Below, in pieces: positions 17,001 to 63,895 of a stretch of 64,000 bases of DNA; within the stretch, counting starts at the first letter, position 1, and every line of letters begins with the position of its first letter. Made by a program: the position numbers and the translations under genes. Below the pieces are notes generated by a model. It was not told the DNA's origin and did no database searches. It saw nothing but the letters and a program-made list of their open reading frames with translations. The DNA comes from Macrostomum lignano (Eukaryota): contig NIVC01000023.1 in assembly GCA_002269645.1 (NCBI GenBank), positions 434,001 to 498,000 on the forward strand, written 5' to 3'.

Positions 17001-18432
17001 TCAGGCGGATGCTGATGCTGTAACTCATTATGACAGCCTGTACCCAAGCCTGTTCTACGGCTTCTGTCATGCCAGTCATTCGCAGCAGGCGTCCACGGTT
17101 AACAATCACCATCGGCAAGAAGCTAGGGTAGAGAGGGAGGTCAATAAAATTGATGAGGAAAGAAGCTCTGCATTGCAGACTCCTGTATTTGAGCCTATTA
17201 GCGAAGACGAAGGCGATGGCGGTGTTAGGGAAGAATTGTCGATAGAAGATTATTTGTTAACGGCGGATGCCAGCTCGGAGGTTGGCACCGAGGCGGCTGC
17301 CGCTGCGGCTGATTCGCTGTTTAAATTCGGTCAGGGCTCAGACTTTTCCAGCGGTGCGGCCGACCTGCCGAATGGCGACGACCTGGGAGAAGCTCCATTA
17401 AGTTTATTGTCTAGCTCGGATAATCCGATGTCTAATCCTACTATTAGTAGTCAGCATTTTGGACCGGCTACTCCTGCGACCTCATCATTGTCTGAGCTGC
17501 ATCCGCATCAGCAACAGCATCAGCAGCTTCAACAGATTGCTGAACAGTCAGACAAGCATTCTGACGACATTAATAGCGATGCTGATAGTCTAGACATTGA
17601 CTGTCTGGAAGTTGTTGACGTGTTAACTATTGACGATCTTAACAAAGACTCCTCCGATCAAGAAACAAAGACTTTAGATCCGCCAGTGATAGCTGAAAGT
17701 TATTTGAATTCCTGCGATTGCTCCGCAAGTCCAATTATTGACAATTTCGATGTCTTTGACACGACAATGTCGGATAGGAAATTCACTGTCCCGGAGCCGT
17801 TGGCTAATGCCTATCAACAGCTGGCTAGAGCTTTGCAGGCAGCTTATAACAGCGCTGTGGATTTCCAGTGTCATCAGGAACCGCAGCAACAGTCTAGCAC
17901 CGTTGCTTCTAGTAGCAGCAGAAAACGTAGTCATTCCGACATTGAAGCTTCTCAAAGTTTGCCTTCATGCGTTGATAAGCGTCGCCGAGCCGAAGCCGAG
18001 GCCGCCGAAGCTATGGTTGCCATGGCAACTAATCGCCTCAACAATATCAGGCGAATAGACGATACTAGATTAGAGTGCTTGGAATATTTGGACACAGAGT
18101 TAAATGGGGTAGTTAGCGAGGCCGCTGTTGGCAATGCCGCTAGCGGTGTCCAATGCAACAGTGACCGGCAATTGGCCGCTAGGCCGCCCCCGAGGCCCAT
18201 TGTGCCGCTGTCCCACCAGACCTTGACTCTTACGGGTGCTTGGCGACAAACTCAGCTGTCCGTCGTCTCTACTGCTAGCCCTGCCGCCGCCACTGTAGCT
18301 ATCTCGGCCACAGGCTCCGACGCTGCTACCGCCATTACTAATGGAGAGTGCTGGAGCGTTGACTTCGATGCCGGCAATGACTTGGTTATTGGCAGCAGGC
18401 TCTCCAGTGGAAATGCGGTCAGGTACACCTAG
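11030..18432 (+). CDS. Multi-exon hypothetical protein (~791 aa; basic/helical N-terminal part, polyQ and acidic low-complexity C-terminal part, possible NLS)
   Basis: Exons 11030-11099, 11209-11304, 12047-12148 (weaker donor GTTATG), 13519-13725, 14427-14621 and 16727-18432. All junctions are GT..AG in phase 1 and join into one open frame that ends in the 550-aa track ORF. No family recognised. Confidence 0.75.
11381..11939 (+). repeat. 15-bp intronic minisatellite (TCAGGATATTCACTG)
   Basis: About 37 units in intron 2 of the hypothetical gene. Confidence 0.95.
12340..13490 (+). repeat. 30-bp intronic minisatellite (GATACCTGAATCTCGCAGAGGTGAGACTTT), homogeneous core ~12560-13270 with diverged flanks
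   Basis: The tandem unit is visible directly and explains ORFs 12449 (+) and 12692 (-). Confidence 0.95.
13745..14240 (+). repeat. 22-bp intronic minisatellite (TCTAGTCTCATATTCATTGTAA)
   Basis: About 20 units, decaying toward the 3' side. Confidence 0.9.
14698..15020 (+). repeat. 23-bp intronic minisatellite (AATCTAGTCTCATAGCTGATTAT)
   Basis: About 13 units. Shares the AATCTAGTCTCATA core with the 13745 array. Confidence 0.9.
15650..16062 (+). repeat. 30-bp intronic minisatellite (TTTTACCCTGTGGGTCACTCCTGTCCAGTG)
   Basis: About 14 units. Explains ORF 15748. Confidence 0.9.
16425..16700 (+). repeat. C-rich degenerate repeat (ATCTGACCCCCT / CCCTAATCCAT) just before the 16726 acceptor
   Basis: Short tandem units are visible. 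Confidence 0.8.
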
Positions 18433-19265: not shown

Positions 19266-19897
19266 TGCTTATCTGCCTCAGTATTTTCTCAAGAGCTTGT
19301 TTATCCCTAATTTGTTACGCATTGCTATATAGCAACCCTGCATTGCAATCAAAGCTTCACATTGCTATGTACCCCCTCCCTAGCAGAAAAATATAACTAT
19401 GCCTTTGTATTTTCGTATATAGATGCTGGCTTGTGCAGTTAGATGCAGGCAATGGAAGTAATAATTTCAAAGCGGATCTCCCGAGCGCAGAGATATCTTA
19501 TAAGTAGAGCCACGAATCCTTCCATGCATGTGCGGCAATGTGACTGTCTCCTTATAGCGAAACTGCTGATCTAGTCGTTTCCTGGCACTCGTTTCTGCCT
19601 ATATTCTATAAATAATAATATTTATCTAGTATTTCATAGTTAAGCTACTAAATGGATAGTTCTATCCAAAATCTAGGCTCAAATGCGTGTTATTTTTGGT
19701 TGAAATCAATTCTAGAATTGAAAAAGCACACTGCTCCCTTTGGGTTAGTACCAGTATTTTCTGACTACAGATTTAGCATTTCATTGCTCAGGTCGCGATA
19801 ACTGAATTCTCGTTCCCCTTCGTATCTTTTTCTGATCAGTTTTGTCAATTTTTGTTATAGATTTTGTTCAAATACAATATAATCCCTGTTAAGTCCC

Positions 19898-20965
19898 TCC
19901 TGTGTGTCACCTGTGTCACCTGTATCTCTTGTGTGTGTCACCTGTGTGTGTGTCCTGTGTGTGTCACCTATATCTCCTGTGTGTGTCACCTGTATCTCCT
20001 GTGTGTGTCACCTGTATCTCCTGTGTGTGTGTCACCTGTATCTCTTGTGTGTGTCACCTGTGTGTGTGTCCTGTGTGTGTCACCTATATCTCCTGTGTGT
20101 GTGTCACCTGTATCTCCTGTGTGTGCGTTACCTGTATCTGCTGTGTGTGTCACCTGTATCTCTTGTGTGTGTCACCTGTGTGTGTGTCCTGTGTGTGTCA
20201 CATATCTCCTGTGTGTGTCACCTGTATCTCCTGTGTGTGTCACCTGTATCTCCTGTGTGTGTGTCACCTGTATCTCTTGTGTGTGTCACCTGTGTGTGTG
20301 TCCTGTGTGTGTCACCTATATCTCCTGTGTGTGTGTCACCTGTATCTCCTGTGTGTGCGTCACCTGTATCTGCTGTGTGTGTGTCACCTGTATCTCTTGT
20401 GTGTGTCACCTGTGTGTGTGTCCTGTGTGTGTCACCTGTGTGTGTGTCCTGTGTGTGTCACCTATATCTCCTGTGTGTGTGTCACCTGTATCTCCTGTGT
20501 GTGCGTCACCTGTATCTGCTGTGTGTGTGTCACCTGTATCTGCTGTGTGTGTCACCTGTATCTCCTGTGTGTGTCACCTGTATCTGCTGTGTGTGTGTCA
20601 CCTGTATCTCCTGTGTGTGTGTCACCTGTATCTCCTGTGTGTGTGTCACCTGTATCTCCTGTGTGTGTCACCTGTATCTCCTGTGTGTGTCACCTGTATC
20701 TCCTGTGTGTGTCACCTGTATCTCCTGTGTGTGTGTCACCTGTATCTCCTGTGTGTGTGTCACCTGTATCTCCTGTGTGTGTGTCACCTGTATCTCCTGT
20801 GTGTGTGTCACCTGTATCTCCTGTGTGTGTGTCACCTGTATCTCCTGTGTGTGTGTCACCTGTATCTCCTGTGTGTGTGTCACCTGTATCTCCTGTGTGT
20901 GTCACCTGTATCTCATGTGTGTGTCACCTGTATCTCATGTGTGTCTCACCTGTATCTTATGTGTC
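19898..20965 (+). repeat. (GT)-containing minisatellite (GTGTCACCTGTATCTCCTGTGT, 22-24 bp)
   Basis: Tandem units with a variable number of GT dinucleotides. Explains ORFs 19864-19904. Confidence 0.95.
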
Positions 20966-22880
20966 CTTTCGGCACCTCAGCAGCTTTGCTGTGCTTCTTT
21001 TCCTCATTCATTGGCTTTTTTGTTTGCTCCATTTAATCGCCGGTCGCGCTGTCAAGGACACCTCTCTTCCTCGTTCTCATTGTCATTTCTCTAAACCCCT
21101 CCTTTTTTAATTTCGTTCAAAATTATAGAATTATAGTGTGACTACTAATTCTTTCGCAATTCCTTACCCTTTTGTCTTTACTTTAATTCAGAATCCTTCA
21201 AATCCTTTAGTTTTCAGTTAAAAAATCTTATCTAAAGCTATTTCATTAGCAGCTTTTTAAAAACAGTTAAACGGAACAATTATTTGTTTTACTGCCAGTA
21301 GGCTGAAAGTGCTTCTTTTCTTTTACTTATTTTCTTTTATTACTTTGTCATTTTTAGATCCGTCTGGAGCTGACAGATTTGGGTGGAGCGCTACCAGCAC
21401 AAATAAAATGTATTTCTTTTACTAAGCATTTCTGTGATCTATTCGTGTGTATTTATTCAACATTATTGGCTTGCAAAACTGAAACATTCTATCTATTGTA
21501 TATTGCGTATTCGTTACATTTCATTCGTTGAAATTTGTTTTAATATGGTTGAAGCTCTCACTTTCTTGTAATAAACAATTTTGTTGTTTATTGTTGATCA
21601 GTACGGCGCGTTTTCACGTGTTTGGCTTAGATTAATATATGTGTTTCTTAGAATTTTACGAGAGGTGTGCGGACTTTCCAGACACCAATCGTATTTTGTG
21701 TTGGCCTTTTTACTCAATAAATTTGTTGTCTTTTGTGTTCTGTGTTTGCGGGTTTGGTTTGGTTTTTATTCGGTTTTAAGGGCCATCTCCAGTATACCAA
21801 GTATAACTGTCACCCTTTGCATGCTGATTGTTTGACTTTGTTGAATTTTTATTAAAAAATGGAAATTGTATAAAAAAAGATCTCAGCTGTTTGAAATGCG
21901 AGCAAAGATTATTTCATTTTTTGATGACATCTTTTTCACTTGTCGCTATTCTTGACTACTTCATTTTTCATTGTTTTTCTTAAAAGTTGAGCTAAGTGTG
22001 CTTAGAAATTAAGGTAAATCTTGAATCGATAGAGCCCTTAATGTTTAAGTAGTATAGGCATGCATTAATTTATTCTTCAATACACGTCCTGGAATAAGCG
22101 TGTTGTAGAACAAAATTATAGAATAGATGATTTCAACTATGGGAGAGTCATATTTACAATTTGCCGTAGTTATCAGCATTAAGAACGAAGGTGATAGGAC
22201 AATTTAAATAGATCGATTTTAATAGAATATCGCGTTTGTAATGATGTGCTTATATAATTAAAATGAAAAAACACTCAAAGCCAGATTATAACATTCCATT
22301 GATTTCTTTAGTATGTTTGAATTGATAAACTTGTATAACTCTGGTTTCGCACTGGCTTGAATTGTACATTAGCCTGCTTGTCCCGTTCCCGTTAAATAAT
22401 AGCCACTGACGCATTAACACCTGCTAATTGAGCGGCAGGGAAAGCACCAAAGTAGTTGATGCAACCAGCTGTCTATGGCCAAAACTCTATCAACCGCCCC
22501 CACAATTTCTTAAGTCTACTTTATAGAAAACAAAAATAGTCTATGGTTGTGGTTGGGAGGACTTCGTCCCTGCGCCCTGATCAACTTCGAAGTTGGGGCT
22601 CCGCCCCTACTACACCCCTTAGGGAAAAACATTCTACGGTAAAATATCTGACAGGTATTGGTAGTGGTAGTTAAAGTGTAACCCTGTGCTTGGGCCACCC
22701 GTTATAGTTCGTGCAAATAACTAATCAACAAATCTTATGACAATAATATTAGTTGAGGCCCATATTTACAATGTTAAACATATGGTTCTATTGAACCGAT
22801 CACGGTTGAGTTTTGATTCGATTAAGTCTTGAAAAAACGGGAGCATACAAGGTTAGTATGCTAGAAAACTTGCTCAATGA

Positions 22881-25800
22881 TCAAAGCGTCGTCTCTCGTG
22901 ACGGATTCGTTTTTCCTGTTGTTATGTTTGACAGAAATTTGCTGTTAGAAATGTTTGTTGGCCCGTCGTCGCATAGTACGCTATAGTTAGACGAATAGAC
23001 TTCGTCGGATACAGCCGTTTCTAAGGCAACCGCAGTGGTTGCCGTAGCCGTGGTTGTCATGGTTTCCATTGTATTGTCTTCTTCAAGTGGCGGTTCGCCC
23101 AGAATATTGTGATTGCATATTGGACAGGTCTGATTGGCAACTAGCCAATTGTTGAGGCATTGCAAATGAAATCCGTGTCCGCAGGGCAGCGTACGGTGTG
23201 GCTCGTTGGTGTTTTGAAACGGCTCCAAGCAGGTTGAGCAACATTTTCGGCGAAGATGCTGGGTCAGATGCTGGTCCGCTGCTGATCCTGCCATCTTGGG
23301 GTTCCTTATTAACAGCGTCCCAGCTGTGTTGTTGGTTTCCCGATAGGAGTAGAACTGAAGAAAGAAATGGCTACCGGCAATATACAGTGGACATTAAACT
23401 TTTTGGCTAAAACAATCATAAGCCAAATACGTGGCAAAAATAGTCGTGCTATTAAAGTTCTGTCGTCAACAACGTCTACTGCAGTAAGACAACGTTTGAA
23501 GTGTAGACGAGTGTTTACTAGTGCTATTGTGTTTTGTAATTGTCCTCTGTCTGTTTGAAGTTTTATTCAACTAGAGCCAAATATTATTATAAAGCTTCTC
23601 CTACCTTAACTAGCAGCCCGATTCCGATGATGCAGAAGGCCAGAAAGAACAGTAGGAAGGCCGCAATCTCCGCGTAGAATGTCATCCGAGTGGTTTCGTG
23701 ACCTCGGTTCCCAGTGTGACCACTGTACCGACTTTTGACGCGTGAAGCGGGTCGAATATCAACCTTGGCGTGGTATTTTGCTAAATCGAGCGACTCCAAC
23801 AGGTCTAAATTTGTTGCATCTCTTGAGTCTACTATTGCCACCGTGATGTTGAAGCCTTCTTGGTCTTTTCCAGCTTCCATTAGCTGTGGAATCAATAATT
23901 CAGAAGACCTAGTTTAATGCTGATATCCTACTTCAAGTAGCATATCATCATACCAGAATTCTAAATATAATCTACCTGTTTTCGCAGGTGTCCGTGAGCG
24001 TTGCGCACGTCGAACACTAATCCAACGGCGCCTCGTTTAGCCGCCCTCCGAGTCTGCTCAGCCAGTCGATTGCAGGTGCTTGGCGCAAACCAATCGGATT
24101 CTTTGGGATAGACTAGGCCAATCCATGCCTCGTGGTGCAGTTGATCGGTGTCTTCGCGACACAGACCCAGCGATAATATCTGTTAGAAGGTTTTTTCGGC
24201 TACTTATTAAGTATTTTATATACAAGTTTGCAACTTTCAAAAAAAAATGTGTGGTCACCAAGGTTCTAAACTTAGAACAGCGTCACGAGGCTTGGGCATG
24301 AACTTAGGTTTCAAATACGCTCGTAATTAAGAACGTAAAACTTAATTTCTTGGAAAAATACTTGCTTTTTGAAAATTTGAAACTTTTTTGAAACTTAAAA
24401 ATACTTAATTAGATTGCCTTTAAAAGCAGAATCAAATGCTCGTCTTTTAATATGACATCCAATTTTATTGTTGCTATAATTTTTGTAAACATCAGGCATT
24501 TATAAAATTTACAAATTTTAATTTTTTCCTAAAGCTGAAACTTTCTTCGAAAAGTTGTCCTTGTTTCAATTCTGTGTAGACATTTATTTAATCGGCCTAA
24601 TTTACTTTCATAATTACTTAGCATTTCATGTTCTTATAGAATGAACGACACTCATAGGATTTTTCGGACAATTATCGATACAAGCGAGAGAATAGTCATC
24701 ATTCAAGAGACGTCTATTTCGGAAAAATACGTTCAAATCAGAGTTTGATATTTTGCAGGATTGAAATGAAAATTCACTAGTTGGTATAAGCTACTACAGA
24801 GCCTATTTCCAGATTTGGATCGATAGGGCGTGGCAACTGAGCTATCAAATGGGGCAGTCTGGTGCACCGCCTTTGTTGCTAATGAAGGCATAGCTTAGCT
24901 ATAATCAATAGGAGTTGACAGTGCGTGTAGCAGGATGAAGTCAACAGGAAAGAGATTGACTAAACTTTTCTTGTTTAGCTTTCCATGCGGCTAGTTCCGT
25001 TTATCCATGCATCCATTTTACCTGACAGGGCATATCGTTTTCACTTTTATTATATCTCAAACAGACAACCCGTCCCGTTCGTGTGTATCGTCACTTCACC
25101 GCGCATCTCTATACCTGGCATATTTCCTTCCTATTTCTCCATACTAATTGCGCTGCTCTGGTACGTCTTTAATGCAACTCACAGTTTTACTCTGTTGAGT
25201 ATCGATTATTTGCCTTTGCCTGGTTTTTAAACAAAAAAGATGAACGTAGTGGGAGAGGATGAAGTTTAACGATGAATAGCTATTTGTATGGCAGAACTAG
25301 AAGCTATTTTCTCTTACAAGCTACAGTATATGCACTGTTGATTTCAGAATTTTTCCAACATTTCTGAGCTCGAATTCTTATCTGCAGGTTTATAAGCCTA
25401 TTAAAATATGCAATATAATTCACTCAAAAAGGTCGCAACTTTTTCTAGCAGATACTGAGAAATGTCTAAAGAGATAAAGTGAAACTCAACCAAAGTTTTT
25501 GAGCTATCAAAGCCAAAGATGGGATTGTAGCCTAGAGACTAGAGCGCCGGACTCGGCTGAAAGGTCGGGGTTTCGATTCTCGATCTACTCAGAACAAATT
25601 GTGTCCTTACGCAAGATAATTAACTCTGCATTGCTTCAGTTCACCCAAGCTGTAAAATGGGTGTCAGCATTATCTGGGGTAATTGAGGGTGTGTGTGGCC
25701 GACTCCCCAGTCCTTGGGCTGAACAGCCGTACGCAACCTTCAGATGAGCTGTCGGTTGCACATCTGCGCATTCGCGCAGGTGTAATCAATTATTAATATT

Positions 25801-31351: not shown

Positions 31352-32840
31352 ATGGAGCGTCTGTTTGACTACGACGCAGTCGGTTTCGACATCGATCTCA
31401 CGCTGGGCCGTTATCAGTTGCGCAATCTGGTCAGTCTAGTTTACGTTCAATTGGCAGACTATTTAGTTAAGCATCGCGGCTATCCCGATCATCTGCGCAG
31501 TCTTGACTGGTCATCGCCAATTGAGTGTGGCTTAATGAGTAGGGCCGCTATTTTAGACAAAATAGGCGGCAATCTGCTTTTGATGTCGCCCACAGGTGCA
31601 GCATTGAGAGTTTGTCACGGCAGCAAACAGTTGGACGCTAAATTAGCTTATCCGCCAGACGGTCGGCCGCCGTTTGCTCAAGCCGTTCTCAATAGCGGCT
31701 ATCGACACGAACGAGATGGTCGCTATCGATTTCAGGATACTCACTACGACTTGCCTGGCAGTTTGATATTCGCTAAATTGGTGCGTTGGGGAGGGGGGGG
31801 GCTTCAGGACCTCTGGTTGCGCAGCCACATTCATTTGGGGCTTTGTGAGCACAAAAACTGAAAATGGCCAGGTGGGTTGCAGTACAGTACAGTACAGTAC
31901 AGTGCAGTACAGTATGATGCTTCATATACGTGCTGATATTAAACTAAAAGCAACTTGGCTTCATCAACAGGTGGACTTGGCAGAAGAGAATCGAACCACC
32001 CCACTGACTGACTGCAGCAGCCTTTGGCAGGATTGCTACTCAGCTTTGCTTCACGTCTACTCAGATGATGGCGCTTATTTTAAATATGTATTAGCTAATC
32101 CCAGCGCTTACCTGTGCCCGGTGACCTCCGGAGTTCGAGCGCTGCTCAAACAGCTTCGCCAACGCGGCATTTATATCTTTTTATTATCATCCTCTGAGGC
32201 TCAGTTCGCTGCCAGACATCTTGAGCACATTCTGGGTCAGGATTGGCCGGATTTATTCGACGCCTGCCTGTTGGAGGCTGGGAAGCCGAACTTTTTTATG
32301 AAAAAGTCCAAATCGTATTATTCAAGCTCGGCTAGTTACTACAGCAGCTACGAAAGCTTCGAACGCCTTCCTTTCGGTCGGGGTAAAGCTTACATCAGCG
32401 GCTGTGCGGAAGAATTTGAATGGAAATTTCTTGGACAATGTGATGATAAAACTCAATCCAGTAAGATTGCCTACTTTGGCGATTCTGTCCGATCGGATTT
32501 AGTCACGGCTTCTTTAGTTGCTAAGTGGGACATCTGGATGGTTATTGAAGAGCTGAATTTGCTGCCCAACTCTGCTGGCACAATTCCCGAGCTGGCTTCT
32601 AAACTAATTGTTAACCAATCGGCGAATGCAGCTGCTGCTACTGCTAGTAGTAGCCATGAAGGCTGTCGACTATCGAGTGACGCTTGGCTTGCTGGTTTAT
32701 GCTCGTCTAAAGACCGTGAAGGCGACCAATCACAAGGCGACGATTTCACGGTGAATGGCGAGGTGACACTGTGGGCCTCGATGTTGGCGAGTCACGCCAC
32801 CGCTGTGATGTCCTGTCTGGAAGATTTATTGCCAGTTTAG
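31352..32840 (+). CDS. NT5DC1: 5'-nucleotidase domain-containing protein 1 (HAD family), ~432 aa
   Basis: Exons 31352-31780 and 31971-32840 (TTG|GTGCGT .. caacag|GTG, phase 0). HAD motif I DIDLT, YDLPG, DLFD..KPNFF and motif IV GDSVRSD. The AVGFDIDLTLGRY start matches remembered NT5DC1 VVGFDLDHTLCRY. Confidence 0.9.
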
Positions 32841-34416: not shown

Positions 34417-35317
34417 GATTTCAGTGTATGACCATGGGATTTCAGTGTATGACCATAGGATTTCAATGTATGACCATGGGATTTCAGTGTATGACCATGG
34501 GATTTTAGTGTATGACCATGGGATTTCAGTGTATGACCATAGGATTTCAGTGTATGACCATGGGATTTCAGTGTATGACCATGGGATTTCAATGTATGAC
34601 CATGGGATTTCAGTGTATGACCATGGGATTTCAGTGTATGACTATAGGATTTCAGTGTATGACCATGGGATTTCAGTGTATGACTATAGGATTTCAGTGT
34701 ATGACCATGGGATTTCAGTGTATGACCATGGGATTTCAGTGTATGACCATAGGATTTCAATGTATGACCATGGGATTTCAGTGTATGACCATGGGATTTC
34801 AGTGTATGACTATAGGATTTCAGTGTATGACCATGGGATTTCAGTGTGTGACCATGGGATTTCAGTGTATGACCATAGGATTTCAATGTATGACCATGGG
34901 ATTTCAGTGTATGACCATGGGATTTCAGTGTATGACCATGGGATTTCAGTGTATGACCATAGGATTTCAATGTATGACCATGGGATTTCAGTGTATGACC
35001 ATGGGATTTCAGTGTGTGACCATGGGATTTCAGTGTATGACCATAGGATTTCAATGTATGACCATGGGATTTCAGTGTATGACCATGGGATTTCAGTGTA
35101 TGACCATGGGATTTCAGTGTATGACCATGGGATTTCAGTGTATGACCATGGGATTTCAGTGTATGACCATGGGATGTCAGTTTATGACCATGGGATATCA
35201 GTGTATGACCATGGGATTTCAGTGTATGACCATGGGATTTCAGTGTATGACCATGGGATTTCAGTGTATGACCATGGGATTTCAGTGTATGACCATGGGA
35301 TTTCAGTGTATGACCAT
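34417..35317 (+). repeat. 21-bp minisatellite (TCAGTGTATGACCATGGGATT)
   Basis: About 43 units. Confidence 0.97.
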
Positions 35318-35488
35318 CGACTCAGGGAGTGGCAATTCTAGAAGCAAGACCTAGATAAGTTTTTAGCTTTCATTTATGTTGAAATGCCCTATTATTAATT
35401 AATATTTTTTCACATTGTTCCATTTCAGTCCTGAGACTTTTCACCTTAATTGAACTCATTATTTGTTGTATTTAATTGTGTTTTATAA

Positions 35489-53916: not shown

Positions 53917-56900
53917 TCAAGCAGCCAGAAGGCAAACTGGAAATTTCTCAGTAACGAACAGAGTTTTCAACAGGGCCGGTCTCATTTTTAGAAACCGTTT
54001 CACTTGGCCAACAATAACGTCGCCAGGCCCCGGCTGGTCGGCGTTGATCCAGCGAACGGCGGATCGGGCGGCCGCCTGAGGCGACAGCGGCCCGACAATC
54101 ATTAGGCAGGCCAGGCAGCGACGGCGCAACGAACCAATTCTAGAGTCTTTGTTTCGATCAGCTGTTTTATCTAACAGCCGCTCAAGAAATGGAATCAACC
54201 GGCTGACAATCCAAGGCGGTTGAACGCCGCCTCCGCGGCACAGTTCGGCAATTGAACCCGGCTGAAGCAGATAATCTAATTCGTCGTCGTCAAGGCAACA
54301 ATCGGCGCTGTTATTATCGTCTCTATTATCAATAATAGCGGCTATCCCGGCATTAATCCGGTCTAAATAGCTCAACGGTTCGGCTGGCAAAGATTCGAGC
54401 ATGTCGATCCTGTGGGACAAGAAGAATGTCCAATCTATCACTGGATCGAGAGGCCAACCGTCCGGTATTGCGCTAGCAACCGCTCGAAACGCGGACGAAG
54501 TGTTCAAATCGCGAACAAAATCGTCGACAGGAAAAGAGCGCCGTTTCAATCGGCTGGCGGATTCGCCGCTGGGCGCCGCAGGCTGGTCGACCGTCTCGGA
54601 GTCGGGCGATCTGATCGGCGACAAGAGCGACGGCAAAACCTGTCGATTATTAATTGAACTTGCCACCGAGGCTTTGTCAAATTCGTCGTCTTCGTTAAAA
54701 TCGGCAATTGCCAGATTGCACGAAGCATTGTCGAAGTCTTCGCTATTTGTTGTGGAACAATTGGCAATTCGATGATGATGAGGATCGCTAGAAGCGGCAC
54801 TCGATGAAGCTGATGCAGTTGTTTTGACTCGGACTACACTTTCTTGTCTTTCTACAACCGTTTGAGTCGAATCTGTTGCTACTTCTGCTATGGAAAGTCT
54901 CGATTCGACAGGATCTTCTGCTGGATACTGAGCTTTTAGTTTTAGCTCAGTAGTATTGTTAGCATTTTGAAGTGTGACATCTTTTTCAGATGTGAAATCT
55001 TCGCTAAAAGAAGGTTCAATGAATTTTCTATTCTCATTGTGCAGTGAATCTTCCACAACCGTCACACTAAACGATTCATTTGAGTCTTCCATTGCATCAT
55101 TAACAGATGGTTCCTTAGCTTCTTCCACTGCGACAACAAACGAATCAGATGGTTCCTTAGCTTCTTCCACTGCGACAACAAACGAATCAGATGGTTCCTT
55201 AGCTTCTTCCACTGAGACAACAAACGAATCAGATGGTTCCTTAGCTTCTTCCACTGCAACAACAAACGAATCAGATGGTTCCTTAGCTTCTTCCACTGGG
55301 ACAACAAACGAATCAGATGGTTCCTTAGCTTCTTCCACTGAGACAACAAACGAATCAGATGGTTCCTTAGCTTCTTCCACTGAGACAACAAACGAATCAG
55401 ATGGTTCCTTAGCTTCTTCCACTGAGACAACAAACGAATCAGATGGTTCCTTAGCTTCTTCCACTGCAACAACAAACGAATCAGATGGTTCCTTAGCTTC
55501 TTCCACTGGGACAACAAACGAATCAGATGGTTCCTTAGCTTCTTCCACTGCGACAACAAACGAATCAGATGGTTCCTTAGCTTCTTCCACTGCAACAACA
55601 AACGAATCAGATGGTTCCTTAGCTTCTTCCACTGGGACAACAAACGAATCAGATGGTTCCTTAGCTTCTTCCACTGGGACAACAAACGAATCAGATGGTT
55701 CCTTAGCTTCTTCCACTGGGACAACAAACGAATCAGATGGTTCCTTAGCTTCTTCCACTGCGACAACAAACGAATCAGATGGTTCCTTAGCTTCTTCCAC
55801 TGCGACAACAACCGAATCAGATGGTTCCTTAGCTTCTTCCATAACAGCAGATTCCTTAGAATCTTCTACAGCAACATGTAAAACAGATGATTCCTCGTCT
55901 GATGTAACACTATCTGAATCCTCATTCTGCTCAACAATGGGCTCATCTGTCGTGGTGCCATCTGCATCCTGCACAATAGGCTCATCTGTTGCAGTGCCAT
56001 GTGCATCCTGCAAAACAATAGGGTCATCTGTTGCAGTGCCATCTGCATCCTGCAAAACAATGGGTTGATCTGTTGCAGTGCCATCTGCATCCTGCAAAAC
56101 AATGGGCTCATCTGTTGCAGTGCCATCTGCATCCTGCAAAACAATGGGTTGATCTGTTGCAGTGCCATCTGCATCCTGCACAATGGGCTCATCTGTTGCA
56201 GTGCCATCTGCATCCTGCACAATGGGCTCATCTGTTGCAGTGCCACCTGCATCCTGCACAATGGACTCATCTGTTGCAGTGCCTTCTGCATCCTGCACAA
56301 TGCGCTTATCTGTTGCAGTGCCATCTGCATTCTGCACAATGGGCTCATCTGTTGAAGTGCCATCTGCATTCTGCACAACAATAGGCTTATCTGTTGCAGT
56401 GCCATTTGCATCCTCATCCTGCAGGACAATAGTGACATCAGACGATGCTTCATCTCGACATTCTGCACTTATTTCAATAATGCCAGACGAAAGTTTCGCA
56501 TTGGACCTCGTGTTATAGGCAAACGACTTGATCGGCAAAGGAGGCTCTAATGGACGCCGTCTTTTGCTTTTAGCAGCGCCGCTTCCATTGCCTTCCTCTT
56601 CGCTGGATGTAGCATCCAGATCTACCCGGTGGGAATGCCTTCGCCGAATAACGCCAGTTTTTGGAGACTGGGATGTTTTAGACTTAGAGAAGTCAGCACC
56701 GCAACTAGCCGAAAGACTCTGTCTGTAGCGCTGATGTTTATTTCTACGGCTGCAATCTTTGTCGTACATTTGAAGCGTTCTTCTTGGACGCTGATTAACA
56801 GAAGACAGGCACTGCTCTATAGACAACTTTCTATTAGCAGCAGTCTTTGCTGTTTCATCGGAAACAATCACAACGGATTGATTGGAGGAGCACAGAGGCT

Positions 56901-57375
56901 TTTGTACATGCATTTGAGCTTCACTGTGAGGATTGGAGTTCTTAGGCCTGGTGGATTCTTCCGCCTGAGGTTGCGGTTTATCCTCATCATTATCCTCATC
57001 GCTAGAAGAGGTGGCGTCCAAATCAACACGCCTAGGACGCTTAGGTTGAACTGCTGACACCCCAGGATCGGTGGCGCGGCTGCTTGTTCGTTTAGACGCG
57101 CGACGTTTCGGCTGCTTCAACTGACTCAATTCTAGTCGAGCCTCCGCTAATTCGTGCCGAGTTCGCTGCAGGTTAGCTTCGGTTAATGACAGGGCAGCTT
57201 TCAATGCTGAGCAACGATTAGCCGATTCTCTAGCTCTGGCCAGTTCGGCTTCCAGCGAACTGACCCGGCGGCACTGTCTAGCATAGGCTCGATGAAGCTG
57301 GTCGCATTCAACTAGGAGAGACTTGGCTCTGAATAGGGCTCGGACCAAGTCTTCGCGACTGGCGTCGGACTGCAT
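53917..57375 (-). CDS. 1152-aa single-exon protein: N-terminal coiled coil, acidic tandem repeats, helical C-terminal domain; possibly ICE1 (little elongation complex)
   Basis: Uninterrupted ORF with non-repetitive ends and an acceptor (ttttcag) 16 nt upstream of the ATG. N-terminal LVRALFRAKSLLVECDQLHRAYARQC resembles remembered ICE1 YVEALITLKQKIINTDNLLTEYQKKC. The CDS call is strong; the ICE1 identity is tentative (~0.5). Confidence 0.85.
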   Translation of the reverse strand: MQSDASREDLVRALFRAKSLLVECDQLHRAYARQCRRVSSLEAELARARESANRCSALKAALSLTEANLQRTRHELAEARLELSQLKQPKRRASKRTSSRATDPGVSAVQPKRPRRVDLDATSSSDEDNDEDKPQPQAEESTRPKNSNPHSEAQMHVQKPLCSSNQSVVIVSDETAKTAANRKLSIEQCLSSVNQRPRRTLQMYDKDCSRRNKHQRYRQSLSASCGADFSKSKTSQSPKTGVIRRRHSHRVDLDATSSEEEGNGSGAAKSKRRRPLEPPLPIKSFAYNTRSNAKLSSGIIEISAECRDEASSDVTIVLQDEDANGTATDKPIVVQNADGTSTDEPIVQNADGTATDKRIVQDAEGTATDESIVQDAGGTATDEPIVQDADGTATDEPIVQDADGTATDQPIVLQDADGTATDEPIVLQDADGTATDQPIVLQDADGTATDDPIVLQDAHGTATDEPIVQDADGTTTDEPIVEQNEDSDSVTSDEESSVLHVAVEDSKESAVMEEAKEPSDSVVVAVEEAKEPSDSFVVAVEEAKEPSDSFVVPVEEAKEPSDSFVVPVEEAKEPSDSFVVPVEEAKEPSDSFVVAVEEAKEPSDSFVVAVEEAKEPSDSFVVPVEEAKEPSDSFVVAVEEAKEPSDSFVVSVEEAKEPSDSFVVSVEEAKEPSDSFVVSVEEAKEPSDSFVVPVEEAKEPSDSFVVAVEEAKEPSDSFVVSVEEAKEPSDSFVVAVEEAKEPSDSFVVAVEEAKEPSVNDAMEDSNESFSVTVVEDSLHNENRKFIEPSFSEDFTSEKDVTLQNANNTTELKLKAQYPAEDPVESRLSIAEVATDSTQTVVERQESVVRVKTTASASSSAASSDPHHHRIANCSTTNSEDFDNASCNLAIADFNEDDEFDKASVASSINNRQVLPSLLSPIRSPDSETVDQPAAPSGESASRLKRRSFPVDDFVRDLNTSSAFRAVASAIPDGWPLDPVIDWTFFLSHRIDMLESLPAEPLSYLDRINAGIAAIIDNRDDNNSADCCLDDDELDYLLQPGSIAELCRGGGVQPPWIVSRLIPFLERLLDKTADRNKDSRIGSLRRRCLACLMIVGPLSPQAAARSAVRWINADQPGPGDVIVGQVKRFLKMRPALLKTLFVTEKFPVCLLAA

Positions 57376-57479: not shown

Positions 57480-58105
57480 TACTACAAAGACTCTTACCGG
57501 ATTTCGACAAAGACCCTTTACGGATTATCCACTGCTACAAAGATTTCCACTGACTCCTACCGGATTTCTACAAAGACCTTTACCGAATTTCTACAAAGAC
57601 CTTTACCGGATTTATACAAAGACCTTTACCGAATTTCTACAAAGACCTTTACCGGATTTATACAAAGACCTTTACCGGATTTATACAAAGACCTTTACCG
57701 GATTTATACAAAGACCTTTACCGGATTTCTACAAAGACCCTTGCTGGATTTCTACAAGGACCTTTCCCGGATTTCTACAAAGACCTTTACCGGATTGCTA
57801 CAAAGACCTTTCCCGGATTTCTACAAATACCTTTTCCGGATTTATACAAAGACCTTTCCCGGTTTGCTATAAATACCTTTTTCGGATTTCTACAAAGACC
57901 TTTCCCGGATTTCTACAAATATCTTTACCGGATTTCTACAAAGACCCTTACGGCATTTCTAAAAAGACCTTTCCCGTATTTCTACAAAGACCCTTGCTGG
58001 TTTTCTACAAGGACCTTTCCCGGATTTCTACAAAGACCTTTACCGAATTTCTAAAAAGCCATTTACCTGGATTTCTACAAAGACATAAACCAAATTTCTA
58101 CAAAG
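57480..58105 (+). repeat. 23-bp minisatellite (CCGGATTTCTACAAAGACCTTTA)
   Basis: About 25 degenerate units. Confidence 0.92.
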
Positions 58106-58879
58106 ACTACATAAAATAATATACAACAATAAAAAATAAAGATCGCGAAGTACGCTCGTACTTTAACTGACAAAAAATTCGCCCCGTTTAATTTTAGATA
58201 CAAAAAAGCATTATTTAATTTATAGGGTCACACTAACAGTAGTATCGAAAGCAAATAACTAATATTAATTGTTAAGTACGATGCTATACAATTATGACTG
58301 CAAGCAGCATACGCAGTAAACCTGACGATTGATAATGAGCATAACAATTGTTAGAATGTTTCACAACGTAGCGAGTGAATCAAGCCACTGAAGACTTGCT
58401 GTTCATTGTCTATGGCCCAAAAAGGGGGTCAAACAGCTAGCATAAATGAAAAAGTCAAGAAAAATGTAAAATCAGAAGGGTGCAATTCATAACAGCATTT
58501 TGGCTACGAGTGGTGCCTGTGCCTCAGGAAGCTTCGATCGAATCTAGCTCGCATTTTTTGTTATAAAAATCATAAATCAATTTTACTACTTATAATTAAA
58601 GGTTAAAATTTAAACGTTGGTAAATAAAAACGCTAAAAAAAACTGTGCACTACTATAAGCTATATATACAACTCGACTGAATTAACAGTAGTAATGCGCG
58701 GATTTTCTAACAATTGTTTTCACCCTTTATTGGCATTATTACAATTTTTTACCAAGCTATTTCCATCCGAATAGGTAAAAAATCTCTAAGTAAGTAATGA
58801 TGATTAGTCAGAGACAGATTTATGAATGGCTGTGGTGGCCTGTCTGTCTTATAGTGTCTGCCGTAGTGAATGCATATTT

Positions 58880-59745
58880 TAATGTGTCTGTGTGTCATCG
58901 ACATGTTCTATGTGTGTCTGTGTGTCCATAGACATGTTCTATGTGTGTCTGTGTGTCATAGCCATGTTCTATGTGTGTCTGTGTGTCATAGCCATGTTAT
59001 ATGTGTGTCTGTGTGTCATAGCCATGTTCTATGTGTGTCTGTGTGTCATAGACATGTTCTATGTGTGTCTGTCTGTCATAGACATGTTCTATGTGTGTCT
59101 GTGTGTCATAGCCATGTTCTATGTGTGTCTGTGTGTCATAGTCATGTTCTATGTGTGTCTGTGTGTCATAGCCATGTTCTATGTGTGTCTGTGTGTCATA
59201 GCCATGTTCTATGCGTGTCTGTGTGTCATAGCCATGTTCTATGTGTGTCTGTGTGTCATAGACATGATCTATGTGTGTCTGTGTGTCATAGACATGTTCT
59301 ATGTGTCTGTGTGTCATAGCGATGTTCTATGTGTGTCTGTGTGTGATAGCGATGTTCTATGTGTGTCTGTGTGTGATAGACATGTTCTATGTGTGTCTGT
59401 GTGTCATAGCCATGATCTATGTGTGTCTGTGTGTCATAGACATGTTCTATGTGTGTCTGTGTGTCATAGACATGTTCTATGTGTGTCTGTGTGTGATAGA
59501 CATGTTCTATGTGTGTCTGTGTGTCATAGCCATGATCTATGTGTATCTGTGTGTCATAGACATGTTCTATGTGTGTCTGTGTGTCATAGCCATGTTCTAT
59601 GTGTGTCTGTCTGTCATAGACATGTTCTGTGTGTGTCTGTGTGTGATAGACATGTTCTATGTGTGTCTGTGTGTCATAGACATGTTCTATGTGTGTCTGT
59701 GTGTCATAGCGATGTTCTATGTGTGTCTGTGTGTTTGTCTGTCTG
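58880..59745 (+). repeat. 30-bp minisatellite (GTGTGTCTGTGTGTCATAGCCATGTTCTAT)
   Basis: About 28 units. Confidence 0.95.
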
Positions 59746-59784: not shown

Positions 59785-62261
59785 CTAAGCAGCCCCACTC
59801 TCGGTCAACAGTTTCACTTCGTACGCTCTAACCAATAGCCGGAATCTGCCGTCGGCTGGCAGCCGAAACGACGCGCTGGGCACCAAGCCGACAGTGTTGG
59901 AGCCGACACGGAGCGGGGCGCAGGTGCAAATGAAACAGCCGGCCTGACTCAGCGGCATCTGGCGCACGTTGTTCAGCCAAACCTCGCGCACTGAGCACCT
60001 GCCCCGGAGTCGAACCAACGGCGCCGCTGTAGCTTCGGCTCCGGTGTTGAACACGGCGTTGCCTAGCAACAGTACGCAAGGCAGCGACGGCAGCCGATCG
60101 GCAATGTCGAATTGAACAGACAGGCCAGGCCTGGGAAGAATGTGCAAACGGCCGACTGGGGCGAGCAGCCGAGCTGAGCTACCGAGAGCTGATTGGGCGC
60201 AGTCGGCCAGAGCCTGCGAAACGGCGTCGCAGTGACGCTGCAGCAAGCAGAGCAGCTCGCCTGCCAGTGGGCAGCTTCTGCGAGTGACAATGGGGAGGCG
60301 TGCGAATTCCAAGAACTGGGGTGATTTCCAAGAACTGGGGTGATTTCCAAGAACTGGGGTGATTTCCAAGAACTGGGGTGATTTCCAAGAACTGGGGTGA
60401 TTTTCAAGAAATGGGTAAGGGCGATTTCTAAGAACTGGGGTGATTTCCAAGAAATGTGTAAGGGCGATTTCTAAGAACTGGGGTGATTTCCAAGAACTGG
60501 GGTGATTTCCAAGAAATGGGTAAGGGCGATTTCTAAGAACTGGGGTACTTTCCAAGAACTGGGGTGATTTCCAAGAAATGGGTAAGGGCGATTTCTAAGA
60601 ACGGGGGTAATTTCCAAGAACTGGGGTGATTTCCAAGAAATGGGTAAGGGCGATTTCTAAGAACTGACGGTGATTTCTAAGAACTGAGGGGCAATTTTTT
60701 AGAGCAGGGGGTGATTTCTAAGAACTGAGGGTGATTTCTAAGAACTGAGGGTGATTTCTAATAACCGGGGGTGATTTCTAAAAATTGAGGGAGATTTCTA
60801 AGAAAGGGGAGGTGCAATTTCTAAGAACTGGGGATGACCTGGAACCAAATTCTAAGAAGGCTATTTTTCGCGTCTTAGGGTTAGGAGAGACTATTGTGGT
60901 ATCATTATAACAAAAATCTCGGCTTGGCTCTGCTCGTGCAATTAACGCCCAGCTTGAGGCCCAAACCCCCAAGCCACAGTGAAGTGTACATGCATAACGG
61001 TAAATAAAGTCAGGGGCCGCTGTACACTCGCATGTACCTAGGAAAGAAAGATAATCACCTGGCAACCACCATGGGATCTTTGAATAGCTGCTGCTGCTGG
61101 TCATTTCCAGCAGCTGTCCGGTGACCAGCAGCATCACCGGATGAAGAAGCTGACAAAGCCGATGCGGCAGGCAGCTGACACCAGGCGTTAACGGCACAGC
61201 CGTGCTGCAGCAGCAGTCGAACTGCTGCCACATTGCCCTGCCTCAGAGCGGCAGTCAGCGCCGTTTCTCCATTCCGCGCCTCATCGGCCCAATTCAGATC
61301 GCAAGCGCCAGCAGCCGATGAAGCTGGCGAGTGCAGCAGGCGAATCAAATCGCCCAGAGAGTTGGCCTCTACAGCCGCAATCAGCCTGGAAGAAGCTTTC
61401 GAAGGCGAAGAGGACAGACAGTCGGGCAGAGAAGCAACAGTCGGGCAATGGTCCAGTGCCGGGAGGGAGTCCAAGAATCTGTCTAATTCGCCTCCGGATT
61501 TGTAATACAAATTTGTGAGCGATGCGGCGGAATCATTGACAGCTGGATGGGATGCGACTGCTGTGAAAGTAGAGCTGTCGGATGCGCTTCGGAATTTGTT
61601 GAACAGACCCTGACTGTCCGACTGGCTGTTTTGCCGCTCCTGCTGCTCCTGTTGCTGCTGCTGTTGGTCTTTTTTCGGAAAATCGACCGCTGTCTGAGGT
61701 GCTTCCGCCTAACAAGAGGCGGCATGTGTTTTGGATTAACGAAATAATGAGATTGACCTGTCTGTCTGTTTGCCTGTATTTCTGTCTGTCTGTCTGTATT
61801 TGTCTCTCCATGTCCGTCTTATCTGTCTGTCCGTCTGTCTGTCAACCTGCCTGCCTGCCTGCCAGCCTGTCTGTCTGTCTGTCTTAGTGCCTGTCTGTCT
61901 GTCTGCCTGCCTGTCTCTCTGTCTACCTGCCTGTCTCTCTGTCTGTCTGCCTGTATGTCTTAGTGTCTGTCTACGAGATGACACAAAAACTTACCGCCTG
62001 CGGCTGTTTCTTATTTTTTCGTTTCTGCTGCCGCTTCTTCTGCCGCTGTTCACTGGTGAACGCTTGCAGAGCAGCCTCGCAGCCAATCAGGTTACTCCTT
62101 GGCTCCCACGTGTTCCAATCGTCCCCAAAGCCCTTCCATTTGATCAAATAGCGCATCGTATGGCCCCGACCCTTCACCCGCAGAATCTTTTCAACTTCGT
62201 ATTCGTTCTCGTGCTCGTTGGCGGCTGGCCAATCGCCGGCCGCTACCGATGGCTGGTCCAT
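59785..62261 (-). CDS. MPHOSPH8: MPP8 / M-phase phosphoprotein 8 orthologue (chromodomain + ankyrin repeats + C-terminal beta domain), ~469 aa
   Basis: Exons 62261-61995, 61708-61059 and 60277-59785 (phases 0 and 2; GCG|GTAAGT, gttag|, AG|GTGATT, cgcag|). Chromodomain YEVEKIL..YLIKWKGF..TWEP. Ankyrin GETALTAALRQGNVAAVRLLLQHGCAVN. C-terminal VRLRGRCSVREVWLNNVRQMPL and RLLVRAYEVKL match remembered human ARLCGPCSVQAVVLNDKFQLPV and KLLIGAYRVQL. Confidence 0.9.
60307..60860 (+). repeat. 19-bp minisatellite (CCAAGAACTGGGGTGATTT) in MPP8 intron 2
   Basis: Tandem units with 39-bp higher-order variants. Confidence 0.93.
61758..61970 (+). repeat. (CTGT)n microsatellite in MPP8 intron 1
   Basis: Degenerate tetranucleotide run. 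Confidence 0.9.
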
Positions 62262-62424: not shown

Positions 62425-63025
62425 AGACTGTGGTTTCTACAGCCTGTTTTTGTAGTTTCTACAGCCTGTATTTGTGGTTTCTACAGCCTGTATTTGTGGT
62501 TTCTACAGCCTGTATTTGTGGTTTCTACAGCCTGTATTTGTGGTTTCTACAGCCTGTATTTGTGGTTTCTACAGCCTGTATTTGTGGTTTCTACAGCCTG
62601 TATTTGTGGTTTCTACAGCCTGTATTTGTGGTTTCTACAGCCTGTTTTTGTGGTTTCTACAGCCTGTATTTGTGGTTTCTACAGCCTGTTTTTGTGGTTT
62701 CTACAGCCTGTATTTGTGGTTTCTACAGCCTGTATTTGTGGTTTCTACAGCCTGTTTTTGTGGTTTCTACAGCCTGTATTTGTGGTTTCTACAGCCTGTA
62801 TTTGTGGTTTCTACAGCCTGTATTTGTGGTTTCTACAGCCTGTATTTGTGGTTTCTACAGCCTGTATTTGTGGTTTCTACAGCCTGTATTTGTGGTTTCT
62901 ACAGCCTGTATTTGTGGTTTCTACAGCCTGTTTTTGTGGTTTCTACAGCCTGTATTTGTGGTTTCTACAGCCTGTTTTTGTGGTTTCTACAGCCTGTATT
63001 TGTGGTTTCTACAGCCTGTTCTTGT
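62425..63025 (+). repeat. 22-bp minisatellite (GGTTTCTACAGCCTGTATTTGT)
   Basis: About 27 units. Confidence 0.96.
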
Positions 63026-63374
63026 GATTTCCACAGCCTGTTTTGGGAGCTGTACTGCTAGGGTGTTTTGTACAATTATTAAACTACTGTCTTTGAACTG
63101 TAACAGCATAAAAAGCTTAAGATCAATAAAAGAAAGAGACAGACTGGCAATATTATCTGCGCAAATTCTGCTACATTTTGCGGTAATGAAAATAATATAA
63201 TTATAATAATACTACCAGAGTAAGAATAAAAAAGTACCAAAACAGATCTAAATTAATCTGCAAGTTATTAATAATTAAACAGTTCAATTACAAATATTCA
63301 TACAGATAAGGACAAAGAAAAACTTCGAGTCATACAGTTACAGATAAGGCAAAATTGGGTTGAATAACGAAATA

Positions 63375-63895
63375 CTCAATTAGATTAGCAATCTATTCTA
63401 CTAATATATATTTACCTGATTAGATTAGCAATCCGTTCTACTCATTCATATATAATCAACTAGATTAGCAATCCGTTCTACTCATTCATATACATGTATA
63501 ATCAACTAGATTAGCAATCCGTTCTACTCATTCATATATAATCAACTAGATTAGCAATCCGTTCTACTTATTCATATATAATCAACTAGATTAGCAATCC
63601 GTTCTACTTATTCATATATAATCAACTAGATTAGCAATCCGTTCTACTCATTCATATATAATCAACTAGATTAGCAATCCGTTCTACTCATTCATATATA
63701 ATCAACTAGATTAGCAATCCGTTCTACTCATGCATATATAATCAACTAGATTAGCAATCCGTTTTACTCATTCATATATAATCAACTAGATTAGCAATCC
63801 GTTTTACTCATTCATATCTACTCAATTAGATTAGCAATCTATTCTGCTCATATATATTTACCTGACTAGATTAGCAATCCGTTCTACTCATTCAG
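63375..63895 (+). repeat. 40-bp minisatellite (TTAGCAATCCGTTCTACTCATTCATATATAATCAACTAGA)
   Basis: About 13 units. Confidence 0.94.

Follow-up and report, generated by a model that had tools for sequence, protein, structure and literature searches.

The closest described system to the gene analyzed here is human MPP8 (MPHOSPH8), the chromodomain of which reads trimethylated lysine 9 of histone H3 (H3K9me3) or H3K9-like methyl-lysine and the C-terminal module of which docks TASOR (PMC7618375, PMC7532188). The human protein carries five ankyrin repeats, its C-terminal fold has been noted to resemble the PINIT domain, and its chromodomain also binds peptides of SETDB1, ATF7IP, G9a, and GLP (PMC7618375). 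HUSH, short for human silencing hub, is still described as a vertebrate complex or as one that extends from fish to mammals (PMC7532188, PMC11295320), and Drosophila and Caenorhabditis, which are reported to lack MPP8, are cited as lacking HUSH (PMC7532188; PMC11295320; bioRxiv 10.1101/2021.11.29.466909). TASOR-like proteins with the DUF3715-SPOC-DomI arrangement were nevertheless reported in 2023 throughout Metazoa, in a paper that mentions no flatworm in its main text (PMC10578480), and from the snail Lymnaea, a transcript of TASOR has been reported (PMC12294990). In the library searched, we found no paper linking HUSH, MPP8, or TASOR to Macrostomum, flatworms, or planarians, and none that mentions HUSH together with Nematostella. 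Here we analyze a 64,000-nucleotide (nt) stretch of the genome of the free-living flatworm Macrostomum lignano (contig NIVC01000023.1, positions 434,001 to 498,000; hereafter the window), in which a three-exon gene on the minus strand very probably encodes an MPP8 ortholog.

A Spliced Gene with an MPP8-Type C-Terminal Domain

Three-frame translation of the minus strand between positions 59700 and 62400 yields a spliced coding sequence of 1410 nt that stays in frame and encodes 469 residues (table 1). An earlier sequence-only reading of the window had joined three fragments into a chromodomain-ankyrin-C-terminal-domain protein; its coordinates, strand, and length proved exact, and both introns have canonical GT..AG boundaries.

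The part of the protein that is decisive for its identity is the C-terminal domain (CTD), which starts with a long helix (residues 311-337, corresponding to human alpha10), continues as a PINIT-like beta-sandwich of nine strands, and ends in RLLVRAYEVKL. The domain is not covered by any Pfam model, and none of the ten orthologs checked has a Pfam match there. When the 163 residues of exon 3 were compared with the whole PDB sequence set, the sole match was the human MPP8 CTD (8qfb_B), at a marginal E value of 0.057 and with an alignment that reaches the last residue. With a leave-one-out profile, built from 32 MPP8 relatives ranging from cnidarians to vertebrates and no Macrostomum sequence, the domain scores 56.9 bits (p 1e-19), against 7.8 bits for the best of 5000 shuffles; with a profile built from eight vertebrate MPP8 CTDs alone, exon 3 reaches 16.2 bits (p 3e-7), against 5.9 bits for the best of 5000 shuffles. 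Motifs shared with the human protein include RLRGRCSVREVWLN (human RLCGPCSVQAVVLN) and RLLVRAYEVKL (human KLLIGAYRVQL). A word-indexed homolog search with a CTD alignment that included the human sequence returned mostly vertebrate fragments and was not used as evidence.

Structure prediction points in the same direction. An AlphaFold2 (AF2) model of the full 469 residues from a 13-sequence alignment reached a predicted local distance difference test score (pLDDT) of only 43.7 and was not used for fold searching. A second model, of residues 185-469 with 33 diverse orthologs and no templates, reached a pLDDT of 83.2 (mostly 82-96 within the CTD) and a predicted template modeling (TM) score of 0.82. 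The top four matches of this model in a Foldseek search of the PDB are all chains of 8QFB (E 3e-14 to 9e-14, TM 0.61-0.67, 274-278 aligned columns, 23% identity); the next match is the PINIT domain of PIAS3, at an E value of 2.5e-3. The distinctive MPP8 C-terminus that the sequence-only reading had recognized is thus present both by profile and by fold.

At the other end of the protein, the Pfam Chromo domain is recognized with an E value of 2.4e-13. Its aromatic cage, Y21/W42/F45, aligns without a gap to F59/W80/Y83 of the human MPP8 chromodomain (9h77_C), so that the cage of Y, W, and F predicted from the letters is indeed intact and lies at the human cage positions.

The ankyrin block lies directly upstream of the CTD and aligns to the ankyrin repeats of the orthologs. 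It is recognized by Pfam as Ank_2 at residues 198-263 (E 6.5e-7, 30.3 bits) and as Ank (23.2 bits), and a single repeat, at residues 235-264, is recognized as canonical Ank. The AF2 model contains two well-formed helix pairs (191-203/207-215 and 239-245/249-257), then a disordered, low-complexity stretch at residues 269-291 with pLDDT below 50 where orthologs carry another repeat, and finally a remnant helix at residues 301-306 that precedes the long helix of the CTD. The earlier estimate of about three repeats was therefore roughly right, as two good repeats and a remnant are present; the human count of five is not reached. Ank_2 scores in orthologs range from 50 to 104 bits, compared with 30 bits in the flatworm.

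Table 1. Features of the MPP8-like gene and the tandem-repeat arrays around it (positions in the window).
Feature	Position	Strand	Remarks
MPP8-like gene	59785..62261	-	ATG at 62261, stop TAG 59787-59785; span 2477 bp
Exon 1	61995..62261	-	codons 1-89, phase 0; chromodomain and basic helix; donor GTAAGT
Intron 1	61709..61994	-	286 nt, GT..AG, acceptor TTGTTAG; largely (CTGT)n-type microsatellite
Exon 2	61059..61708	-	codons 90-306, final codon split; Q-rich low-complexity linker, ankyrin block, low-complexity insert; donor CAG/GTGATT
Intron 2	60278..61058	-	781 nt, GT..AG, acceptor TCGCAG; carries the 19/62-bp minisatellite
Exon 3	59785..60277	-	codons 307-469 and stop; last ankyrin-type helix, long helix, C-terminal beta-sandwich
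Chromodomain coding part	62055..62201	-	residues 21-69; cage Y21, W42, F45
Ankyrin helix pairs	61205..61405	-	residues 191-257; Pfam and AF2
MPP8-type C-terminal domain	59809..60264	-	residues 311-462; profiles, AF2, Foldseek
In-frame 18-nt insertion relative to sister copy	~61124..61141	-	residues 287-292 (HRTAAG)
Tandem-repeat array	57558..58107		period 23 bp
Tandem-repeat array	58883..59734		period 30 bp
Tandem-repeat array	60307..60833		periods 19/62 bp
Tandem-repeat array	61758..61972		period 4 bp
Tandem-repeat array	62429..63045		period 22 bp
Tandem-repeat array	63372..63894		period 40 bp

Distribution and Phylogeny of the MPP8 Family

A profile of the CTD only (helix plus sandwich) was compared with 1.84 billion cluster representatives and recovered 165 proteins at E ≤ 0.001. 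Full-length members of this family carry the domain at the extreme C-terminus, and an N-terminal chromodomain together with an ankyrin block is present in nine of the ten orthologs checked. Every informatively named member is called MPP8 or "M-phase phosphoprotein 8-like"; the remaining labels are "uncharacterized," "hypothetical," or "chromo domain-containing," and one member is misnamed "flocculation protein FLO11-like." Matches come from corals and a jellyfish (Pocillopora, Sanderia), molluscs (Octopus, Magallana, Dreissena, Gigantopelta, Biomphalaria, Elysia, Nucella, Batillaria, Sinanodonta, Potamilus), the brachiopod Lingula, the nemertean Lineus, spiders (Trichonephila, Nephila), mites (Oppia, Brevipalpus), the centipede Strigamia, echinoderms (Antedon, Patiria, Lytechinus, Strongylocentrotus, Holothuria), and hagfish and jawed vertebrates. 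RefSeq entries named "M-phase phosphoprotein 8-like" exist for corals, molluscs, the brachiopod, the nemertean, a mite, and echinoderms, and the spider and centipede entries do not bear the MPP8 name. Invertebrate MPP8 is therefore not the novelty that the sequence-only reading took it for, since MPP8-like orthologs are already in the databases, under names that automated annotation has been giving them for years, and TASOR-like proteins have been published as pan-metazoan (PMC10578480). Among the named family members we found no other platyhelminth, several members being from unnamed read assemblies, and, as far as named members go, M. lignano seems to provide the first MPP8 from a platyhelminth.

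Single-sequence phmmer comparison of the flatworm protein with the proteins retrieved gave Octopus (75 bits) and Lingula (64 bits) as the best matches outside Macrostomum, and the chromodomain and the ankyrin-CTD region align through the last residues with the MPP8-like proteins of Octopus, Lingula, and Antedon. In a neighbor-joining tree of the ankyrin block and CTD, cnidarians, spiralians, chelicerates, echinoderms, and vertebrates each come out as a group, and the flatworm sequence adjoins Octopus. Both the nearest relatives and the tree fit vertical descent, and they point to a single vertically inherited gene that is fast-evolving in the flatworm, which forms the longest branch (mean distance 0.90, vs. 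0.74 among the others). The orthologs of cnidarians (988-1321 residues) and of other spiralians (727-1658 residues) are longer and have fuller ankyrin blocks. Given these lengths and the long flatworm branch, the small size of the M. lignano protein is a derived reduction, which contradicts the earlier suggestion of an ancestral minimal HUSH.

A Second Genomic Copy and the Pattern of Constraint

The genome sequenced from the DV1 line contains large duplicated blocks that are at least 95% identical (PMC5730564), and the gene in the window has a sister copy. GenBank lists BOX15_Mlig011412g1 as an M. lignano "hypothetical protein" of 463 residues that is 96% identical to ours over its full length. 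Its locus lies on contig NIVC01003689.1, where the three exons and both junction peptides are the same as in the window; the peptide across the first junction, for example, reads ..KKQPQA/AEAPQ.. in both the window gene and the GenBank model (slash, junction of exons 1 and 2). Because GenBank's gene models for that assembly derive from an RNA-seq transcriptome assembled with guidance from the genome (PMC5730564), the exon structure is transcript-derived for the sister copy, and the two junctions assumed in the sequence-only reading are supported in this way.

The two loci are 98.4-99.2% identical in the exons, 96.4-97.3% identical in nonrepeat intron and flank, and 81-84% identical in the microsatellite of intron 1. 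The sister gene, in which the minisatellite of intron 2 is expanded, spans 3514 bp, compared with 2477 bp in the window. Six synonymous and 12 nonsynonymous substitutions and one in-frame 18-nt indel separate the coding sequences, and the indel, an insertion of HRTAAG in the window copy, falls within the disordered low-complexity segment that stands in for an ankyrin repeat. The substitutions are unevenly distributed. The folded parts (chromodomain, ankyrin block, and CTD) differ by five synonymous changes and one nonsynonymous change, and the sandwich core by one synonymous change and none that is nonsynonymous, whereas the linker, low-complexity insert, and C-terminal tail differ by one synonymous and 11 nonsynonymous changes. 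Thus, 11 of the 12 amino acid differences lie in the linker, insert, or tail, nine of them in the linker and insert of exon 2. With about a quarter of sites synonymous, finding at least five of six changes synonymous in the folded parts has a binomial p of ~0.005 under neutrality. This split between domains and linker argues for constraint on the folded parts.

Other public models of the gene are less complete. The M. lignano models of UniProt/WormBase type (P0002-P0008 and P0081) are fragmentary or frameshifted versions with pieces in the wrong frame, and database counts of "paralogs" of the MPP8-like gene are inflated for this reason.

Proposed Coupling to TASOR and Alternative Explanations

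On balance, we favor the hypothesis that this MPP8 ortholog is a secondarily shortened and fast-evolving one that has kept a conserved, TASOR-coupled silencing role. By analogy with the human protein, the chromodomain would read H3K9me3 or H3K9-like methyl-lysine motifs, and the ankyrin-plus-sandwich module would dock a TASOR-like scaffold (DUF3715-SPOC-DomI) and recruit or stabilize it on repeats. The protein would then tether or spread heterochromatin silencing activity on repeats, an activity that would follow from methyl-lysine reading combined with TASOR-like docking as known from human MPP8. Repeats make up more than half of the M. lignano genome, with 21% long terminal repeat elements and 15% tandem repeats (PMC5730564). 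A TASOR-like partner would be expected to persist because the sandwich is retained under constraint and because the lineages reported to lack MPP8 are those described as being without HUSH.

A number of observations weigh against this hypothesis in one part or another. Transcript support is confined to the sister copy and does not extend to the copy in the window. The ratio of nonsynonymous to synonymous differences per site (pN/pS) is 0.67 over the whole gene, a value that rests on 18 substitutions and is uninformative by itself. The chromodomain scores slightly higher against CBX5 (49 bits) than against MPP8 (44 bits), and since HP1/CBX scores are the higher ones, this domain alone does not separate MPP8 from HP1. 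Because vertebrate MPP8 sequences were part of the AF2 alignment, fold and sequence are not wholly separate lines of evidence. In the model, the ankyrin surface that in the human model binds the SPOC domain of TASOR is reduced and partly replaced by the insert at residues 269-291. Human R741 and F813, residues of the DomI interface that, when mutated together with F548G in the pre-ankyrin peptide, abolish HUSH function (PMC7618375), correspond to Ser and Arg in the flatworm protein. With an ankyrin platform that is reduced and contact residues that are not conserved, there would be room for a switch of partner. Finally, a search with residues 110-640 of human TASOR (the pseudo-PARP part of which is identical to PDB 6TL1) recovered 22 proteins, all from vertebrates; this result says little, since the word-indexed search requires shared 5-residue words and distant relatives are missed.

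The most serious alternative, though an unlikely one, is that the gene is a true MPP8 ortholog that has become uncoupled from HUSH and works with other partners in the absence of a TASOR/Periphilin complex. Such partners could be, for example, H3K9 methyltransferase subunits bound by the chromodomain, which would agree with the SETDB1, ATF7IP, G9a, and GLP peptides bound by the human chromodomain, or a SUMO-pathway substrate engaged through the PINIT-like fold. The altered positions of R741 and F813, the reduced ankyrin block broken by a disordered insert, the longest branch in the family tree, and the lack of any flatworm relative in the TASOR search with the human query all speak for uncoupling. 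The same positions, however, also vary in spider, Lingula, and Octopus, and contact residues that vary in all invertebrate orthologs fit coevolution with a partner rather than its loss; for the same reason, the TASOR interface is not to be deduced from residue identity. The TASOR negative, as stated, is limited by the need for shared words. Moreover, TASOR binding is the one role that is known for the CTD of MPP8, the sandwich core shows no nonsynonymous change between the copies, and Drosophila and Caenorhabditis, which are reported to have no MPP8, are also the animals cited as having no HUSH (bioRxiv 10.1101/2021.11.29.466909). We therefore continue to prefer a conserved TASOR-coupled role. 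That a working HUSH-like complex is assembled around a naturally minimized MPP8 of 469 residues with about two ankyrin repeats is a further step, which we propose only tentatively. Of the HUSH-like silencing module that the sequence-only reading had seen here, the MPP8 subunit stands; the remainder of the claim is held back by the vertebrate-only TASOR search and the unconserved interface residues.

It is also conceivable, although quite improbable, that we are dealing with a redundant, decaying duplicate with an intact-looking reading frame and no function. The recently duplicated state of the genome, with its blocks of at least 95% identity (PMC5730564), the overall pN/pS, the degenerate ankyrin repeats and low-complexity inserts, and the position of the gene amid minisatellites are all compatible with decay. 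Yet both copies have an intact reading frame and canonical splice sites, the one indel between them is in frame, and the sister copy is a transcript-derived model. Exons are also more similar than nonrepeat intron and flank, and the five-to-one excess of synonymous changes in the folded domains is hardly expected of a gene that has been released from selection.

The weakest alternative, an unrelated chromodomain-ankyrin protein that is convergent in the way of chloroplast cpSRP43 and MPP8-like at its C-terminus by chance, draws on the equal chromodomain scores against HP1/CBX and on the presence of cpSRP43 among weak PDB matches, and is hardly credible in the face of a leave-one-out CTD score of 56.9 bits where the best shuffle reaches 7.8, an alignment that continues to the C-terminal ends of the Octopus, Lingula, and human MPP8 proteins, a fold match to 8QFB at 3e-14, and a family of 165 representatives in which all informatively named members are MPP8-like.

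Significance

The locus adds a flatworm member to a metazoan-wide MPP8 family and introduces no new system or mechanism; as the gene has already been deposited as a "hypothetical protein," the contribution lies in its assignment as an ortholog. It bears on a discrepancy in the record, in that papers call HUSH vertebrate, yet MPP8, according to database records, and TASOR-like proteins, according to the 2023 paper, are spread across animals. If a minimal HUSH-like complex does operate in M. lignano, then TASOR-coupled, H3K9me-linked genome surveillance would predate vertebrates, and the flatworm protein would define the smallest natural TASOR-docking module. With RNA interference, transgenesis, and a repeat-rich genome, M. 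lignano is a practical animal in which to ask whether MPP8 and TASOR originally served to silence repeats and how much of the ankyrin platform is needed.

Other Features of the Window

Six tandem-repeat arrays lie within 6.5 kb around and inside the MPP8-like gene (table 1), with the 22-mer array ~170 bp upstream of the ATG and the 30-mer array 50 bp past the stop codon. These arrays yield long spurious open reading frames (ORFs) in several frames.

Directly downstream of the MPP8-like gene and on the same strand is an uninterrupted ORF of 1152 codons (53917-57375, minus strand). Its product has an N-terminal coiled coil, two long peptide-repeat arrays in its interior, of the types ..DADGTATDEPIVQ.. 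and ..VEEAKEPSDSFVVA.., and a nonrepetitive C-terminus. The syntenic counterpart at the sister locus (positions 20543-23514 of that locus, L001) is a called gene of 1097 residues that is 77% identical over the first 682 residues. The 1152-residue product was considered as a HUSH partner and rejected, as it has no Pfam match and no similarity to the TASOR set.

Elsewhere, an exon-sized ORF on the plus strand (31845-32840, 331 residues) has Pfam matches to 5'-nucleotidase (PF05761, E 1.5e-23) and to HAD hydrolase, and probably belongs to a gene for a cytosolic 5'-nucleotidase. Long ORFs at 16780-18432, 19864-21110 (three overlapping frames), 12449-13315, and 34424-35341, all on the plus strand, have no credible Pfam domain; their weak matches are to short profiles of repeat-like character, without a stretch that is actually matched, and the four regions probably stem from repeats or represent exons of genes that have not been annotated.

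Comparison with Known Proteins

Two groups of proteins resemble the flatworm protein in one part only. The HP1/CBX proteins have an equally similar chromodomain with the same cage positions. They differ in that alignment with HP1 requires a gap of one residue behind the NL motif, which is not needed between the flatworm and MPP8-family sequences, and in that the flatworm protein has no chromoshadow domain and HP1 has no ankyrin-plus-sandwich module. An identity of HP1/CBX or cpSRP43 type was rejected because of the CTD. The second group is represented by PIAS3 (PDB 4MVT), of the Siz/PIAS SUMO E3 ligases, which shares the beta-sandwich fold of the CTD; identity is 13%, and the flatworm protein has neither SP-RING nor SAP, so that the likeness is one of fold only.

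With human MPP8/MPHOSPH8 (8QFB for the CTD; 9H77, 3QO2, and 3LWE for the chromodomain), the resemblance extends from the chromodomain to the last residue, and the collinearity asserted in the sequence-only reading is borne out by phmmer, by profile, and by fold. The parts follow in the same order: the chromodomain with its cage of three residues comes first, the disordered linker and the ankyrin repeats come next, and the long helix leads into the PINIT-like sandwich that closes the protein. Shared motifs include RL.G.CSV..V.LN and LL..AY.V.L. The differences are those of size and divergence. The flatworm protein has 469 residues, compared with 860 in human, and a low-complexity linker of ~115 residues, compared with ~430, in agreement with the earlier description of a protein about half the human size with a short linker; identity in the ankyrin-CTD region is only 23-27%.

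The invertebrate MPP8-like proteins, including those of Octopus (XP_036358095 cluster), Lingula (XP_013386278), Lineus (XP_064627542), Pocillopora (XP_027038422), and Patiria (XP_038077745), belong to the same family and have the same architecture. They differ in their length of 727-1658 residues and in a clear multirepeat ankyrin block (50-104 bits, vs. 30 bits in the flatworm). Closest to the flatworm protein in size are those of the mites Brevipalpus obovatus (XP_074605635, 449 residues) and Oppia nitens (XP_054163077, 559 residues), which keep all three parts and have ankyrin blocks that are better preserved than that of the flatworm. Because the mite sequences cluster with those of spiders and rank with the family members farthest from the flatworm, their reduction was independent. 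A short MPP8 is therefore viable and has arisen more than once.

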